Positions 1,978 to 61,969 of a stretch of DNA of 64,000 bases are shown here, in pieces. The stretch covers positions 15,128,001 to 15,192,000 of the forward strand of contig JAQFVV010000004.1 in assembly GCA_028023455.1 (NCBI GenBank), read 5' to 3'. A model generated the notes under the pieces. It was not told the DNA's origin and searched no databases. It worked only from the letters and a program-made list of their open reading frames with translations. Numbering within the stretch: position 1 is the first letter of the stretch; each line of letters starts with the position of its first letter. This stretch comes from Epiperipatus broadwayi. Lineage: Eukaryota; Animalia; Onychophora. The position numbers and the translations under genes were made by a program.

Positions 1978-3500
1978 GGTACTTGCCTATTAGCAGCTGT
2001 ACATCGTTTGATGGTGCTGTTTCTGTGCAAAAATACAGAAATATGAGTTTATGCAGTCGAAACTATGCCTATTACAACATTGCCTTTGTAATAGCAGTTT
2101 TGGGCTACGCGATGGTGTTATTCTCTATGCAAAAACACAGAAATCGTAAGACTAGCTATGTGTGGCCAGCTTTATCCATATGTTCAATAATGATAGTTCG
2201 CCACCGTTTGATATGAGGGTGTCTGTTGTTCAATTTCACACAAGTGTTGAAATCTCTTCAAAATCATTGTCTCGCACACCAACTGTAGTAGTATTGTGTA
2301 GTAATAATTATCACCATCAGCGTGCTTCCCTATGCATCTTGGAAACTGCTAGAAATTTGGAAAAGCTTTTTTCAGAGCACGCCAAATTTAAAGTTCTCGA
2401 TGAGATGGCTATACACAACCAAGTTTCAAAAGATATTTTGGGTCTTATGCAGTATTATTATTCTTTTGTATTTGGTTCCACTTACAAGTGACATTTTTTT
2501 TTTTGTTATTGTTTGAAAATAAAAAGTTGTTGTTATTGATGGAATCGATGCTTGTTGTTGTGATTTATTTGAAACCCAATCAATCCAAAGAGATTTTTTT
2601 TGGCATTTGTATTACAGATTTAAAAACCAAGTCGGCTGATAAAACATCAAAACATCGGCTAATGAATTTTTTTGATTTGGGTTGTTTTTTTAATTTTGTT
2701 TAAACGTTTAATTTACTATTACAAGAAGAACATCAATTTGGAAATAAAAAAGTGTTTGGGTTTTGTTTTTGACTTTTCATCGGCAGCAGTGTAAAAAACA
2801 AAGTCGGCTGATTACTGTTTTCATGAAGTGTTGTTTTCGAATTTGTTTTAAATGAAGAATGTTAGTATTAGAAGAATAACATAAATTTGGCAATCCAAGG
2901 AAAACTGGGTGTGTTCTTTTGGGTTTGATTCCTTTTTTAATGAAGTGTTTTGGGTTGCTTTTTTATTTTTGTTTAAATGTTTAATATTAGAAGAATAACG
3001 TCAATTTGGAAATCCAAAGGAAAACAGTTTTGTTTTGGATTTGATTACTTTTTTCATGAAGTATTTTGGATTGTTTTTTAAATTGTTTCAAGATTTTAAT
3101 TTACTATTAGAAGAATAGCATAAATGGGGGAGTCGATTCCTTTTGTAATGAAGTGTTTCAGCTTGTTTTTTTTTTTAATTTTGGTTGAAACGTTTAATTT
3201 ACTATTAGAAGAATAACGTGAATTTGGAAATAAAAATACAATTTGGGGGGATGGGTATTTTACCTTTTGATTAAACGTTTAATTTAGTATTATAAGAATA
3301 ACATTATTCTTGTACTAGTAAATACAATGTTTTAACAAAATTAAAAAAAAAAAAAAACAACACAAAAAACGTTTTTTAATTTAGAATGATAACAATAACA
3401 AAGTAACAAAAAAAAGGCAGGCCCGGAAACATTATATTAATAGGTTTTTGAAGAGAAACAGCGCCATCAAGCGATGTACAGCTGCTAATAGACAAGTACC
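1978..3500. mobile_element. Non-autonomous DNA transposon with 47-bp TIRs, Merlin-like termini
   Basis: TIRs 1978-2024 and 3454-3500 (GGTACTTGYCTATTAGCAGCTGTACATCG..., 3 mismatches). Terminus GGTAC fits the Merlin GGNRM consensus. The candidate 8-bp TSD GGAGAAAG/GGAGGAGA is only 5/8 identical. No transposase recognised. Confidence 0.75.
2690..3310 (+). repeat. Degenerate ~100-140 bp tandem units inside the TIR element
   Basis: Recurring AAACGTTTAATTTACTATTAGAAGAATAAC(R)TCAATTTGGAAAT near 2703, 2850, 2975, 3095, 3188 and 3273. Confidence 0.75.
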
Positions 3501-48655: not shown

Positions 48656-48759
48656 TCTTAAATTATATATTGTTGATACTGTATGATTAAAGTTAAATAT
48701 GGCTATGTCTTAAATTATATATTGTTGATACTGTATGATTAAAGTTAAATATGGCTATG
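48656..48759 (+). repeat. Perfect 52-bp tandem duplication
   Basis: TCTTAAATTATATATTGTTGATACTGTATGATTAAAGTTAAATATGGCTATG x2. Confidence 0.95.
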
Positions 48760-49729
48760 TCAGAACACTACATCGGCTGAGTCAAATTGATGGAAATGAC
48801 TAAGAAGTTTATATAATTGTGTCATCAAACAACATCCATCGAATGAAACCAATAATATAAGAAAATGTACTTTCTTTCATTCTTCAAGCCATGATATGTA
48901 AAATATTTCAAAAAGGCATTCTCGTTGGCACATACTCTATGACAAAATATTATTTTCCAACTCTTATTTTGTAATATTTAATTTTATTTACTAGTGCAGA
49001 GATAGTATGTAATTAAGCATTAAGGATTTTTCATCCTAAGACATGAGCTGTGCTGTGTTTTTTATATCTTAACGATGTCTTGTTGAGTATTGAGAAAATT
49101 CTCAAATAAAGGCACAAGATAGAAACTTTTGGAAAGAAAAGAGTGGCCATCTTATCTTTAAACCTACTTTCTAATTATATAGGCTAATCTAAAGCATCTC
49201 AGTTTAAGAGCTTGAAGATGTTTCTCTGTTCATTTTACTTTCATTATTTTTTTTCTGCATGTTAACTCTTATGAAATCTTTAGATTTACTACAAGTTAAT
49301 ACTCAGAAATATTAGAAATTGTGTAATATTTAATTTTATTTACAAACGCAGTTAAGCAGTGAGGATTTTTCATCCTAATACATGTGCAGTATTGTTGTTG
49401 TTTTTTTAGAATATCTCATTGATGTATTAAGGAAACTCTTGAACTAAGATACAAGATAGAGCTTTTACTATAATTTCACTTTCTCAATATAGATTATGGT
49501 ATGAGCATTTTAACTGATCATAACAAAAAATATAAATAAATCTGGTAACAATTATCATGTTAACACCCATAAACTGACATGGCTGACAATAAATATATTT
49601 AGTGTGTTTAAATGCTAGATGACTAAATTATAATCAATATTTTTTTATATATGAATATTTTAAATCAGTCCATGAGCATTCATTACCTGTTATACATCAA
49701 CTGCATACAATGGAGACTAAATTATTTGT

Positions 49730-57248: not shown

Positions 57249-59605
57249 AATGTTTGAGGAGATTTTATACTTGATAATATATATATATAAGCAATTCTCT
57301 TGTGCTTTAAATAAAGATTATCTCAAGGTTTAAATTGTTGAACTATTTTCCAACTACTGTATATTTGTTTATAAATTAAGAAATGGCTCAAAATATAAAT
57401 TTCAAGAGGGTGAAATAATATTTTGTATGTAGACACTCCAAGTTATAAATTCTAAGAGGTTCAATTTATGTTTCATACTAAATTAAAAAAATATTCAATA
57501 GTTGTACATCTTTAGATCAAATAGTAATATTATAATATTAAAATCCAAGTGCTTAAATGTCTGTATTATTGTTTGAACAATTTGGCATTTTGAAATTTAT
57601 TTTCAGTCTTTAGTTTACTGTCTTTAGTGACAAGTCATTTTTCTAAATCATTTTCTTTTATTCAAAGTAGTAGTTGGATATATACTATTATTTAAATATT
57701 CCCCATTTTGAAGATTATTTTCATTAGGATTTTCCTTAATTGAAATATTTATTATTTTGTATAATAAAGTTTAACAATATTAATAGTAAATTTTATTTAA
57801 TTTTTTATATGATGCCTTGCAGATGTATTGGATATGTTTCTTCGTGTTTTTGGATTATAATGGTGGATACATTTGATCTATATTTTAAACATTGGTTTGT
57901 ATTTTTACTTCTTTTGTGGTGGATATGCTTTAATTTATAATAAAAGGAGAGTTTGTCAGTATCACTAAATATAAATTCTTTCAACATTGCTACCTGTGAA
58001 GCAAATATAAAGCCTGAATAAAGTAGTATATGTAAAAGTACTCTTTATTTATAGGCTGCAAAGATGTTAAATGTATTGAAATTCAGATTAATGAAAATGG
58101 GAAGCACAAAACTAAAACAGTTGCTAAAAAAACAACATATTTTACATTACCCGAATTTCAATATACTTAAAATTTTTGATGCCTATAGGTAAGAATTCCT
58201 TTTATTCATGCTGCTTTATTGAAACTTGGTGTTTTTTTCACAGATAGTACTACTGATGTAATCTAACATTAAGTGTTGCTAATATGATCTATTTTCTACA
58301 TTTGAATTTCAGCTATCTATATGCAACTGGCTTTATTTCTTATATAATATGCTTTGGGAGTTTTTAAAATTTTAAATGATTGATTAATGTATTAATCTTA
58401 TCTTGTATATGTAATATAAAATATGTTTGTTTATTAACTATTAAGATCTTAGCTGATTTGATTTCACACTTCGTGTTTACATTAGTTTGAATTTTAATAC
58501 GCTTAAAATCTTTGCAGTTTATAGATAAGAGTTACTTTTTAACTATGTTATCTTATTCAGAATTTACGTTTATTTTACAGTTAGTGCTGCTGAAGCAATT
58601 TAATGATAGATGATGATGATAAGATCTGCTTTTCATATTTGAATATTGGCTAATGATGTGCAGCTGGTTTTATATCATCTTAAATATTTATCTGACTGAT
58701 ATGTTTGACCTGTATTTATGTGTCTTGGCCGAAATGTTTGATCTAATTACTAATTTTGTAATTCTACCAATATCTGTATCTACTGTTATAGAAATATCAA
58801 AACCTATGGATTTTAGTAATAAGTTCACTTCATAATGTATGGACAGCCTGTTAACTTTTTTAACTTTACTTCCTTTTTCAGCAGACTATAAATGCTTCAA
58901 GCTAAACTTTGTCGTAAAAGTATTAACATATTAAGCAAAACTGTATGAAATGATATTTCTCCTGACTTATGTAACAAATAAAATCCTTTTGGAATTGCTT
59001 TGTCCAAATTAAGGTTTCTGCTTTATCCATAGCAAGATCATCCATAACTGTGTTAAGACTCCAATAACAGTATCTACTCGTAACAAGAATCATGACTTTC
59101 AGGTGCAATATTGATGGCATATGTCTCTCAGAACAAGTTGGCAGTATTTAATGACCACACACTAGGATCAAAGTATATAATCAAAAGATGACAATAATAT
59201 GGGATTAATTTACTAATAAAATGTAAAGAATGACAGGAATTTATTCATCTATCTATTAATTTTCAAAGACCATCTAATAGCTTGGATAAATATAAAAGAG
59301 AAAACAGATATTGAAAAACTGGCAAAAATTGCATAAACTGTCAAATATTTAAAAAGGACTGACCTAGAGTCTCGCCATTATCTTCAATGATCCACAGAAT
59401 AAAAACATATCAAAAAATCCATATATCATTCATAATCTTGGCAACATCAACTTTCATTACATTTTATCTAACTATCTTTCATAAATATATTTTAAGTCTC
59501 CATCTGTGTCATTTGTGAGACATAATGTTTTGGATGATTTTTGTCATCAAATTTTTATTTAAATCATTTTTTTAAATAAATGTTTATATTTTATAACGAG
59601 TTGTT

Positions 59606-61060
59606 AGGAATATTTACTAAGGCTTTAACCTCAAGAATATGCGTGTAAAATGCTATATTAGGAACCTCTACAGGTCTTAACCACAAGCTTACGCTTTGTA
59701 AGAAAAGAGGAGAACCCTTCTTTACTTCAACCTACTTTCTATTTAAATGGGTGAAGCTGAAGAAGTTAGATGTAAAAGCGTGAATCTATTAAATACCTCA
59801 CTGATTAAGTCCACGTTTCTTATTACACATTAATACTCATGAAAATCTTTCAATTTACAATGAGTCAATGGAAAGCTCTTATAGTTAGAAATCTATTATG
59901 ATGATTTAAAGTTGTAATTATAAATTTATTTAAACACACATTGATTACATAATATTTACTAAGGCTTTAACCTCAAGAATATGCGTGTAAAATGCGATAT
60001 TAGGAACTTCTACAGGTCTTAACCACAAGCTTACGCTTTGGAAGAAAAGAGGGGAACCATTCTTTACTTCAACCTACTTTCTATTTAAATAGGTGAAGGT
60101 GAAGCGGTTAGATCTAAGAGTGTGAAGCTATTAAATACTTCACTGATTAAGTCCACGTTTCTTATTACACATTAATACTCGCAAAATCTTTCGATTTACA
60201 ATGACTCAATGGAAAGATCTTATAGTTAGAAATCTATTATGATAATTTAAAGTTGTAATTATAAATTTATTTAAATGCACATTGATTACTTAAGTAATAT
60301 TTACTAAGGCTTTAACCTCAAGAATGTGCATGTAAAATGTGATATTAGGGACCTCTACAGGTCTTAACCACAAGCTTACGCTTTGTAAGAAAAGAGGGGA
60401 AACCTTCTTTACTTCAACCTACTTTCTATTTAAATAGGTGAAGCTGAAGCGGTTAGATCTAAGAGCGTGAAGCTATTAAATACTTCACTGATTAAGTCCA
60501 CGTTTCTTATTACACATTAATACTCGCAAAATCTTTCAATTTACAATGAGTCAATGAAAAGATCTTATGGTTAGAAATCTATTATGATTTTCTTCCAAAG
60601 TATAAGCTTGTGGTTAAGACCTGTAGAGGTCCCTAATATCGTATTTTACACACATATTCTTGAGAGTAAAGTGTTAGTAAATATTACTTATGTAATCAAT
60701 GTGCGTTTAAATAAATTTATAATTACAATGTTAAATTATCGTAATAGATTTCTAACTATAAGATCTTTCCATTGACTCATTGTAAATCAAAAGATTTCGC
60801 GAGTATTAATGTGTAATAAGAAACGTGGACTTAATCAGTGAAGTATTTAATAGCTTCATGCTCTTAGATCTAACCGCTTCAGTTTCACCTATTTAAATAG
60901 AAAGTAGGTTGAAGTAAAGAAGGGTTCCCCTCTTTTCTTCCAAAGCATAAGCTTGTGGTTAAGACCTGTAGAGGTCCCTAATATCGCATTTTACATGCAT
61001 ATTCTTGAGGTTAAAGCCTTAATAAATATTACTTATGTAATCATTGTGCGTTTAAATAAA
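59606..61060. mobile_element. Single insertion of ~345-bp unit multimers: ~2.85 tandem copies + ~1.4 inverted copies
   Basis: Unit starts at 59609, 59951 and 60296. Inversion junction near 60588; inverted period 345. 16-bp TSD TTTATAA(C/T)GAGTTGTT (59590-59605, 61061-61076). Confidence 0.9.
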
Positions 61061-61530
61061 TTTATAATGAGTTGTTGTAACTTTTCATAATCAGTGATAA
61101 ATATTTTCATTAAGGGCAGGTTTAAACTAAGTTTATTATCTAGTCTCATTTTCTTTTAGCAGAATATTGTTCTGTCACAGTATTTTAAAAATTTTAAACT
61201 TTAATGTTTTTTTTAATTTAATTCTGGTCTTATATCTCAAAACTGTTGTCTTTTGGGCAGTTCATCATCATATGCTTACTGTCATTACAAATTTTATAAA
61301 TTTTATACACATTTTTTCAACCTTATATTTTTCAGATCTAATCATCTTTTCATATTACTAGTAAAATGAAATAAATTATTCTCTTTATATCTTCCATAGT
61401 ATTCTTGATTGAGTCCTTTGTGGGGTTTATTGCACCAATTTTTTTATCAACTAAATCTGTTTTAATATTCACTCTATTGATTTGAAACTCTTCAGCATTG
61501 AATTTTGGTCTCTAATCAATCTTTCTATTA

Positions 61531-61969
61531 ATCTGAATTTCTATAGCTGTTTCATTTCTTCTACAATAAATTTTTGTTTCTATTTCAACTTTAAATTTTT
61601 CTACAGTGCCCCTTCAACATTTTTGGTTTTAAAAGTTTCTTTAATAATTTTTTAAAGTTGTCATTTTTTATTTCTCTGTATTTTATTTTTCTACTATTTT
61701 CTGTCTTTTCATAACTATCTGAGTCTCTCTTCCATGTATTTTTAGCTTCTATCTGAATTTCTATAGCTGTTTCATTTCTTCTACAATAAATTTTTGTTTC
61801 TATTTCAACTTTAAATTTTTCTACAGTGCCCCTTCAACATTTTTGGTTTTAAAAGTTTCTTTAATAATTTTTTAAAGTTGTCATTTTTTATTTCTCTGTA
61901 TTTTATTTTTCTACTATTTCTGTCTTTTCATAACTATCTGAGTCTCTCTTCCATGTATTTTTAGCTTCT
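61531..61969 (+). repeat. ~220-bp near-perfect tandem duplication within a probable decayed LINE relic
   Basis: ATCTGAATTTCTATAGCTG...TTTTAGCTTCT x2 (61531-61750, 61751-61969). Confidence 0.9.

Follow-up and report, generated by a model that had tools for sequence, protein, structure and literature searches.

Metazoan non-LTR retrozymes consist of non-coding units of 170–400 nt, and each unit contains a single hammerhead of type I (Cervera & de la Pena 2020, PMC7229834; Li, Clavereau & Pollet 2026 preprint, 10.64898/2026.07.22.740005). These elements are defined by the hammerhead, are expressed as both linear and circular RNA monomers, and are thought to spread via circular RNA made by the ribozyme. 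They co-exist with Penelope-like elements (PLEs), which have been proposed as their mobilisers (PMC7229834; 10.64898/2026.07.22.740005). The hallmarks of PLE insertions include 5′ truncation, partial tandem copies, an adjacent inverted and 5′-truncated copy, and a tail of 30–40 bp at one end only (PMC8557442). This tail corresponds to the sequence that separates two internal start sites of the reverse transcriptase (PMC11167929), and in vitro PLE insertion proceeds without hammerhead cleavage (Frangieh et al. 2024, PMC11167929). PLE machinery also serves non-autonomous Chlamys elements such as MRC1 of Chlamydomonas, which encode no protein and give rise to pLTRs as well as to insertions with multiple copies head to tail (Craig et al. 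2021, PMC8557442).

The 64-kb stretch of onychophoran DNA analysed here (the window) carries an insertion of a non-coding repeat family, F1, which is a ribozyme-less variant of this known kind of parasite and not a new system. F1 resembles metazoan retrozymes in its unit size, low GC content, short tandem multimers, and target-site duplications (TSDs) of more than 4 bp, but neither strand has the type I hammerhead that defines those elements. Without a hammerhead, the production of monomer RNA by the hammerhead route is impossible. Resemblance to MRC1 extends to the lack of protein, the pLTRs, and the multicopy insertions, whereas Chlamys elements are green-algal and share 3′-end sequence with autonomous families; no such similarity was found between F1 and 30 PLE loci.

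A composite insertion and its target site

The insertion occupies positions 59603–61068 of the window, about 1.46 kb, and comprises 2.87 direct and 1.40 inverted copies of a 346-bp unit (Table 1). This remapping bears out the earlier note, which had counted 2.85 direct and 1.4 inverted copies of a non-coding unit of 342–345 bp. The unit has about 30% GC; its largest open reading frame is a chance frame of 63 aa, and it encodes neither a reverse transcriptase (RT) nor an endonuclease (EN). From 59603/59609, the left arm runs through unit positions 342/1 to 346, 1 to 346, and 1 to 295. Its outer end lies at the ‘A’ start site (unit position ~342/1) and its inner end at unit position 295. The right arm, 1.40 units in total (60588–61068), is the only one to carry the 37-nt tail, which terminates at the ‘B’ start site. 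The two arms join directly, with a 1-nt overlap at 60588.

Table 1. Positions of the insertion, its parts, and related features in the window
Feature	Positions	Strand	Remarks
Left TSD copy, GAGTTGTT	59598–59605		Exact match; left arm begins 0–3 nt beyond
Right TSD copy, GAGTTGTT	61069–61076		Exact match to left copy
Left arm, 2.87 tandem units	59603–60588	+	Antisense relative to inferred template RNA
Right arm body, unit positions 100 to 1, then full unit 346 to 1	60588–61031	-	Window + strand is element sense
37-nt ‘tail’, unit positions 346 to 310, past A site	61032–61068	-	Comparable to 30–40-bp Penelope tail (PMC8557442, PMC11167929)
Conserved core, unit positions 262 to 87, in full unit of right arm	60770–60945	+	Sense strand; nhmmer, alignments, pair counts
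Near-hammerhead string, GTGAAG CTGAAGC ... CTTCAC	60439–60488	+	Not a hammerhead
Old copy of sister family F2, unit about 354 nt	48966–49460	+	Same 64-kb window

A TSD of 16 bp (59590–59605 and 61061–61076) had been proposed for this locus. The duplication exists and is exact over 8 bp, while the full 16-mer has one mismatch, C/T at a CpG, and on the right side its first 8 nt are also element positions 311–318. Under an 8-bp TSD, the right arm stops at unit position 310, within the range where such ends cluster in the family (304–311). Since the arm end then falls within the family cluster and the additional 8 nt double as element sequence, 8 bp is the safe length and 16 bp is possible. Neither an empty site nor a second haplotype was found, and the flanks match only old repeats, at 65–78% identity.

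Units within the insertion are 92–95% identical to one another and 92–97% identical to the consensus of 37 F1 copies, with the first unit somewhat more diverged (6.4% from consensus). Among the 47 consensus CpG sites that are covered, 21 persist and 22 now read TG/CA through decay, which agrees with the partial CpG retention seen before. The subfamily-diagnostic positions 185 and 209 have the same base in every covering unit. The single TSD pair around the whole composite, the direct inner junction, and these uniform diagnostic bases support the origin of this old insertion in a single event, as had been suggested for a retroelement multimer with an inversion. The units nevertheless differ by 5–8%, and the template may therefore have been a heterogeneous multimer, or the units may later have undergone conversion.

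Fixed ends and head-to-head arms across the genome

A first look at the 5.6-Gb genome yielded 4,477 F1 candidates; 40 of them were scored and all 40 proved to match, in 114 match rows distributed over many contigs. Ends and arms were compared in 27 independent F1 insertions and 18 insertions of the sister family F2, which were picked by full-length matches, so that the sample covers copies of at least one unit. In this sample, outer ends are fixed, while inner ends scatter along the unit. The outer ends form two clusters, A (unit positions 337–346/1–10) and B (294–311), which lie 32–49 nt apart. Two-armed insertions, which make up 11/27 of F1 and 15/18 of F2, always have a plus arm followed by a minus arm, head to head and with the fixed ends outward (11/11 and 15/15). 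Most of them combine an A end on one side with a B end on the other, that is, they have a one-sided tail (10/11 for F1, 10/15 for F2). One-armed F1 insertions usually end at A (14/16).

Exact repeats of 8–14 bp directly adjoin 13 of the 27 F1 insertions. With automatically set boundaries, the two flanks had a word of 8 bp or more in common in 9 of the 27, compared with 7.5% of mismatched flank pairs. Arms are 1–2.9 units long, and arrays are short (1–3 units), dispersed, and not expanded. Inner arm ends show some clustering inside the conserved core, at positions 149–174 in F1 (10/38) and 168–174 in F2 (5/35), and an excess of arms of exactly unit length was not significant once arms had been mapped with a multimer query.

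Ribozyme searches and the conserved core

A search of F1 and F2 against Rfam, which the earlier note had recommended for all ribozyme models, was run at E values up to 10 and found no ribozyme. At the gathering score, the whole window contained no ribozyme or known RNA family, and both searches returned only chance snoRNA-like matches. HDV-like ribozymes were covered by Rfam’s HDV-like models, and the same library detected the hammerheads of this genome above the gathering score. A hammerhead scanner, which recovered the hammerhead of locus L031 with 0 deviations, was applied to both strands of the F1 and F2 consensus sequences, taken as circles; none of its matches had fewer than two core deviations, and those with two were at chance level. 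Together, Rfam and the scanner uphold the initial observation that neither strand has a canonical hammerhead.

The near-hammerhead string listed in Table 1 is present as first described, with violations at A9 and A15.1 and no stem II. Its interpretation as a variant self-cleaving motif is unsupported, and a variant hammerhead at this position is ruled out: the string is antisense to the inferred template, helix II is missing, and the core deviates at both A9 and A15.1. Moreover, the F2 version reads CTAAAGC while the neighbouring bases are conserved, so that the catalytic G5 is lost. Among a variant motif, a different motif, and no ribozyme at all, the last is best supported.

The head-to-head layout of F1 also occurs in the hammerhead families of this genome, as anticipated when the architecture was likened to hammerhead fold-backs. 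In sequence, F1 has no similarity to the sampled hammerhead family with units of 411–432 nt. Descent from hammerhead retrozymes through loss of the ribozyme was rejected, with no similarity to loci L031–L034 detected by blastn or nhmmer.

Alignments and nhmmer identify a core domain common to F1, F2, and a further sister family, F3. Its counterpart in the left arm of the insertion is found at 60036–60211, on the antisense strand. The core has five helices with some compensatory changes, and pair counts place changes between families in four of them. F1 RNA folds better than shuffled sequences on both strands (z of -3.3 and -2.6). RNAalifold recovered no consensus structure from 31 decayed copies, and the structure derives only from family consensus sequences. 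A strand test based on G-U pairs was not decisive: pairing reached 85.0% of cells on one strand and 80.4% on the other, and the structure had been optimised on the first. The core (87–262) is most likely a recognition feature for the enzyme or for the transcription machinery.

Could F1 be a full retrozyme after all, with a self-cleaving motif that has escaped recognition and may lie in the core, monomers ligated to circles, and rolling-circle reverse transcription producing the 2.9-unit arm? The multi-unit arms, the better-than-shuffled folding of both strands, and a core kept from family to family, four of whose helices show compensatory changes, would all be accommodated, and the pile-up of inner ends within the core might correspond to a defined 5′ end of the RNA. 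This is nonetheless unlikely. No Rfam ribozyme matches F1 or F2 although the library finds the genome’s hammerheads, and the hammerhead scan is negative on both strands. Coding PLEs yield the same tandems without circles, the fixed A and B starts fit internal initiation on linear RNA, and conserved structure is equally expected of an enzyme-binding or promoter element. It is very doubtful that the core of F1, F2, and F3 is a new RNA-processing or self-cleaving motif that took the hammerhead’s place, giving an RNA 5′ end at ~150–175 and allowing monomers or circles; if it were, F1 would represent the first class of retrozymes whose ribozyme is not a hammerhead.

Probable mobilisation by Penelope-type machinery

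The F1 insertion is probably (at roughly 80%) a non-autonomous, non-coding retroelement that was copied into the genome with enzymes borrowed from a PLE, its reverse transcriptase and its GIY-YIG endonuclease. F1 and F2 display all four footprints of PLE insertions, including pLTR partial tandems, the inverted 5′-truncated copy, and the tail (PMC8557442, PMC11167929). PLEs are abundant in this genome, with 10,243 GIY-YIG candidates and open frames of up to 901 aa. One young insertion, L038, serves as a control and shows these footprints too: its two inverted arms, which are 100% identical, derive from a coding PLE fragment and are flanked by a 12-bp TSD, and just one of them bears a tail, of ~42 nt. 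In L038 and in the hammerhead families L031 and L032 alike, the left arm is antisense and the right arm is sense, and F1 agrees with this polarity if its sense strand is the minus strand of the unit.

Under the proposed mechanism, cDNA synthesis on F1 RNA would be primed by both 3′-OH ends of a staggered cut, 8–14 nt apart, one priming at start site A and the other at start site B. Synthesis could pass beyond one unit either on a multimeric template or by a jump of the enzyme back to a start site, and the two cDNAs would then be joined in the middle of the insertion. No self-cleaving ribozyme would be necessary. A circular RNA template would not be needed for the F1 insertion, because partial tandems, an inverted 5′-truncated copy, and a one-sided tail are normal PLE products (PMC8557442, PMC11167929).

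Some of these traits occur in target-primed reverse transcription of the L1 type as well, where TSDs of 8–14 bp, 5′ truncation, and 5′ inversions are also seen. A SINE-like element moved by a LINE, with the inversion produced by twin priming, is nevertheless improbable. Two starts ~40 nt apart, with a tail on one side only and with partial tandems as a routine product, are specific to PLEs and absent from LINE insertions (PMC8557442). In addition, the inversion recurs in 11/27 F1 and 15/18 F2 insertions, always as a complete head-to-head arm. Neither fixed end has a poly(A), microsatellite, or simple-repeat tail, and Rfam finds no tRNA, 7SL, or 5S head; F1 thus has neither a Pol III-derived head nor a LINE-type 3′ tail.

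Tandem units next to an inverted block might also be expected if a plain satellite or a segmental tandem array had undergone local inversion, or in an assembly artefact, since fold-backs are a known artefact of long reads. Either is hardly credible, as the same architecture and fixed ends recur with different TSDs at dozens of unrelated loci, in arrays of only 1–3 units flanked by TSDs. Long homogeneous arrays, as in satellite DNA, were not found for F1. The least plausible origin is one at the DNA level, from a rolling-circle (Helitron-type) or tyrosine-recombinase element carrying tandem repeats: internal tandem arrays occur in some invertebrate Helitron derivatives, but such elements have defined termini at both ends and are not known to produce 8–14 bp TSDs or variably truncated head-to-head arms, and no matching terminal features are seen in F1 insertions.

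F1 differs from PLEs themselves in having no RT or EN, in a whole unit of only 346 nt, and in bearing no likeness to PLE 3′ regions as sampled in 30 copies. In nhmmer searches at E up to 1, profiles of F1, F2, and the core showed no similarity to these 30 loci, sampled from >10,000 candidates and including about 1.2–1.5 kb downstream of the endonuclease. PLE coding sequence was neither attached to any of the 45 F1 and F2 loci nor present in the window. It is a conjecture that a PLE of the Naiad clade (Craig et al. 2021) would be a natural partner for a parasite without a hammerhead; none was found among 30 sampled GIY-YIG loci, all 30 of which have the canonical RT-then-EN order.

With Penelope-type mobilisation as the preferred reading, F1 offers natural, genome-scale evidence for mobilisation in trans without a ribozyme, in agreement with the in vitro results (PMC11167929). 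Its value is moderate, as elements of this kind are already known. F1 separates two questions that are tied together in the retrozyme model, namely how the elements are copied and what purpose the hammerhead serves. The regular pairing of A and B on opposite arms also constrains how the two start sites of the Penelope reverse transcriptase are used at a staggered break.

Structure and age of the window insertion

The composite repeat near the right-hand end of the window is a real insertion, moderately old, of a non-autonomous retroelement of Penelope type that lacks a hammerhead. A 346-nt consensus of its family (F1), built from 37 genomic copies and mapped onto the window as a multimer, divides it into two arms of opposite orientation that overlap by 1 nt where they meet (see table). 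The left arm ends at one of two start sites used by the family (A), and the right arm has a 37-nt extension reaching the other (B). The description of the element in an earlier sequence-only note was borne out by a reading of the region and three repeat analyses. Units within the insertion are 92–95% identical. Roughly half the CpGs of the consensus have been lost (of 47, 21 are kept and 22 now read TG or CA), in a window of 27% GC with a CpG observed/expected ratio of 0.33. The insertion contains no open reading frame besides a chance one of 63 codons.

Coordinates of the arms and of the elements compared with them
Feature	Coordinates	Strand	Content
Left arm	window 59603/59609–60588	+	2.87 head-to-tail units, multimer mapping
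Right arm	window 60588–61068	− (opposite orientation)	1.40 units, multimer mapping
Old F2 copy	window ~48966–49460		~1.4 units of ~354 nt; source of cross-family comparison
Coding Penelope-like fragment, two inverted arms	L038:876–3030 (G000:C6351); arms 934–1945 and 2007–3021		arms 100% identical; GIY-YIG in both

The direct repeat GAGTTGTT flanks the element at 59598–59605 and 61069–61076. A target site duplication (TSD) of 16 bp had been proposed in the earlier note; 8 bp of it are certain, and the 8 upstream (TTTATAAY) only possible. The sole mismatch in the 16-mer is a CpG transition, which favours the longer reading. However, the right-side copy of TTTATAAY is also the element's own positions 311–318, and the 8-bp reading places the right-arm end at 310, within the family's end cluster at 304–311.

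Three points support the whole composite having been laid down in one event: a single TSD pair encloses it, its inner junction is direct, and its arms follow the usual A/B pairing. At positions 185 and 209, every unit departs from the family consensus, and the four covering units agree; the remaining differences are mostly private, many of them at CpG sites. Neither an empty site nor a second haplotype of the insertion was found in the assembly.

Other repeats lie nearby. An old dispersed repeat in the left flank (58700–59572; about 20 matches at 65–78% identity) stops some 30 bp before the insertion site. A tandem duplication at 61531–61969 (220 bp x 2, 99% identical), unique in the genome, is a local duplication rather than a repeat family, and two perfect tandem copies of a 52-bp sequence occupy 48656–48759.

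Dispersed families with fixed outer ends

The F1 unit retrieved 4,477 first-look candidates from the 5.6-Gb assembly. All 40 candidates scored matched (114 match rows), with full-length ones at 91–95% identity. Rather than a local array, F1 is a dispersed mobile family present on many contigs. The sister family F2 (unit ~354 nt; 2,876 candidates) has the same layout, and is older, judging from copy identities of 75–90%.

Among 27 independent F1 insertions, exact flank-adjacent repeats of 8–14 bp were found in 13. With automatic boundaries, a shared flank word of at least 8 bp occurred in 9 of the 27, against 7.5% of mismatched flank pairs. The target sites are AT-rich, and several look like the element's own tail, the stretch from A to B on one arm (e.g. 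TAATAATTTAAA, CATAATAAATTAGT). This apparent resemblance may reflect the published dependence of the Penelope endonuclease on tail sequence.

In every F1 and F2 arm, the outer end is fixed and the inner end variable. The + arm precedes the − arm in all two-armed insertions (11/11 F1, 15/15 F2), so the fixed ends always face outwards. These ends form two clusters, A at unit positions 337–346/1–10 and B at 294–311, 32–49 nt beyond A. One side ends at A and the other at B in 10 of 11 two-armed F1 and 10 of 15 two-armed F2 insertions; of the 16 F1 insertions with one arm, 14 have their fixed end at A. Inner ends pile up within a conserved core, at 149–174 in F1 (10/38; ~3 expected) and 168–174 in F2 (5/35; 0.7 expected), the ranges having been picked post hoc. 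Reverse transcriptase (RT) might stall at the structured core, or the RNA might have a defined 5' end there. The multimeric arms could derive from a multimeric transcript, from template jumping back to a start site, or from a circle.

Penelope-like elements as models and possible partners

Published hallmarks of Penelope-like elements (PLEs) are strong 5' truncation, partial tandems (pseudo-LTRs), an adjacent inverted 5'-truncated copy, and a 30–40-bp tail, often at one end only (Craig et al. 2021, PMC8557442). All four are present in F1 and F2. In vitro, a PLE reverse transcriptase initiates at two closely spaced positions within the RNA, the tail being what lies between them, and insertion does not need hammerhead cleavage (Frangieh et al. 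2024, PMC11167929). F1 resembles animal retrozymes in its manner of insertion, but lacks the hammerhead that defines them.

GIY-YIG candidates in the genome number more than 10,000, the longest open frame among them being 901 aa. RT similarity precedes the endonuclease, as in the canonical order, in 26 of 30 sampled PLE loci, that is, in all where it is detectable; in the others, the frame ends just after the endonuclease. The two-armed coding fragment at L038 has a 12-bp TSD (TTGAGCAATTAA) and a ~42-nt tail on the left arm only, and this very young insertion suggests that PLEs were recently active. Its left arm is antisense and its right arm sense, as in the hammerhead families L031 and L032. 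If F1 follows this polarity, its sense strand is the unit's minus strand, which in the right arm corresponds to the + strand of the window. Canonical-looking hammerhead motifs from other families happen to fall in F1/F2 flanks (L002:1342–1375(−), L009:2808–2837(−), L081:2971–3002(+)); the density of hammerhead repeats in the genome is evidently very high.

Profiles of F1, F2 and the core had no match in the 30 PLE loci sampled or in four hammerhead loci. PLE coding sequence neither lies in the window nor adjoins an F1 or F2 copy at any of 45 loci. PLEs of the Naiad type, which lack a hammerhead (Craig et al. 2021, PMC8557442), would make attractive partners; none was seen among the 30 sampled GIY-YIG loci.

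Ribozyme searches and the conserved core

The retroelement multimer with an inversion and no canonical hammerhead that the earlier note described is borne out; of the options it raised (a variant self-cleaving motif, a different one, or none), the last is best supported. Rfam models gave no ribozyme on F1, F2 or the window: the whole window had no match at gathering score, and F1 and F2 gave only chance snoRNA-like matches at E up to 10 with lax filters. The same library detects the genome's hammerheads above gathering score. A custom scanner, run on the unit as a circular sequence and tolerant of the minimal, palindromic helix III seen in Penelope-type hammerheads, recovered the L031 hammerhead without deviation. 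On either strand of F1 and F2, it found nothing at one core deviation or fewer; matches at two deviations were at chance level, in positions non-homologous between the families. The proposed near-hammerhead (60439–60488) is rejected: it lies on the antisense strand, breaks A9 and A15.1, has no helix II, and reads CTAAAGC in F2, where the catalytic G5 is lost and neighbouring bases are kept.

Profile searches define a core at F1 positions 87–262, common to F1, F2 and F3, a third type represented by two copies in L009. Alignment of junction regions shows the families to be homologous over the whole unit. The sense strand of the family consensus sequences folds into five helices. Among 31 copies, pairing holds in 85% of cells, compared with 36–46% when partners are slid by 1–3 columns, and both-side changes occur in 20 cells, against 9 expected from shuffles. 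Compensatory pairs between F1 and F2 are present in four helices. Few independent events lie behind these figures, and the structure was drawn from the same sequences; the evidence for a functional RNA fold is rated moderate. Compared with shuffled sequences, a single unit forms a more stable fold on either strand (z −3.3 sense, −2.6 antisense). The analyses gave no indication that the core cleaves. Its sense-strand loop CUUCAUGCUCUUA is nearly invariant among families, and the simplest reading of fold and loop is that the mobilising enzyme may bind there, or that they may serve as a transcription signal.
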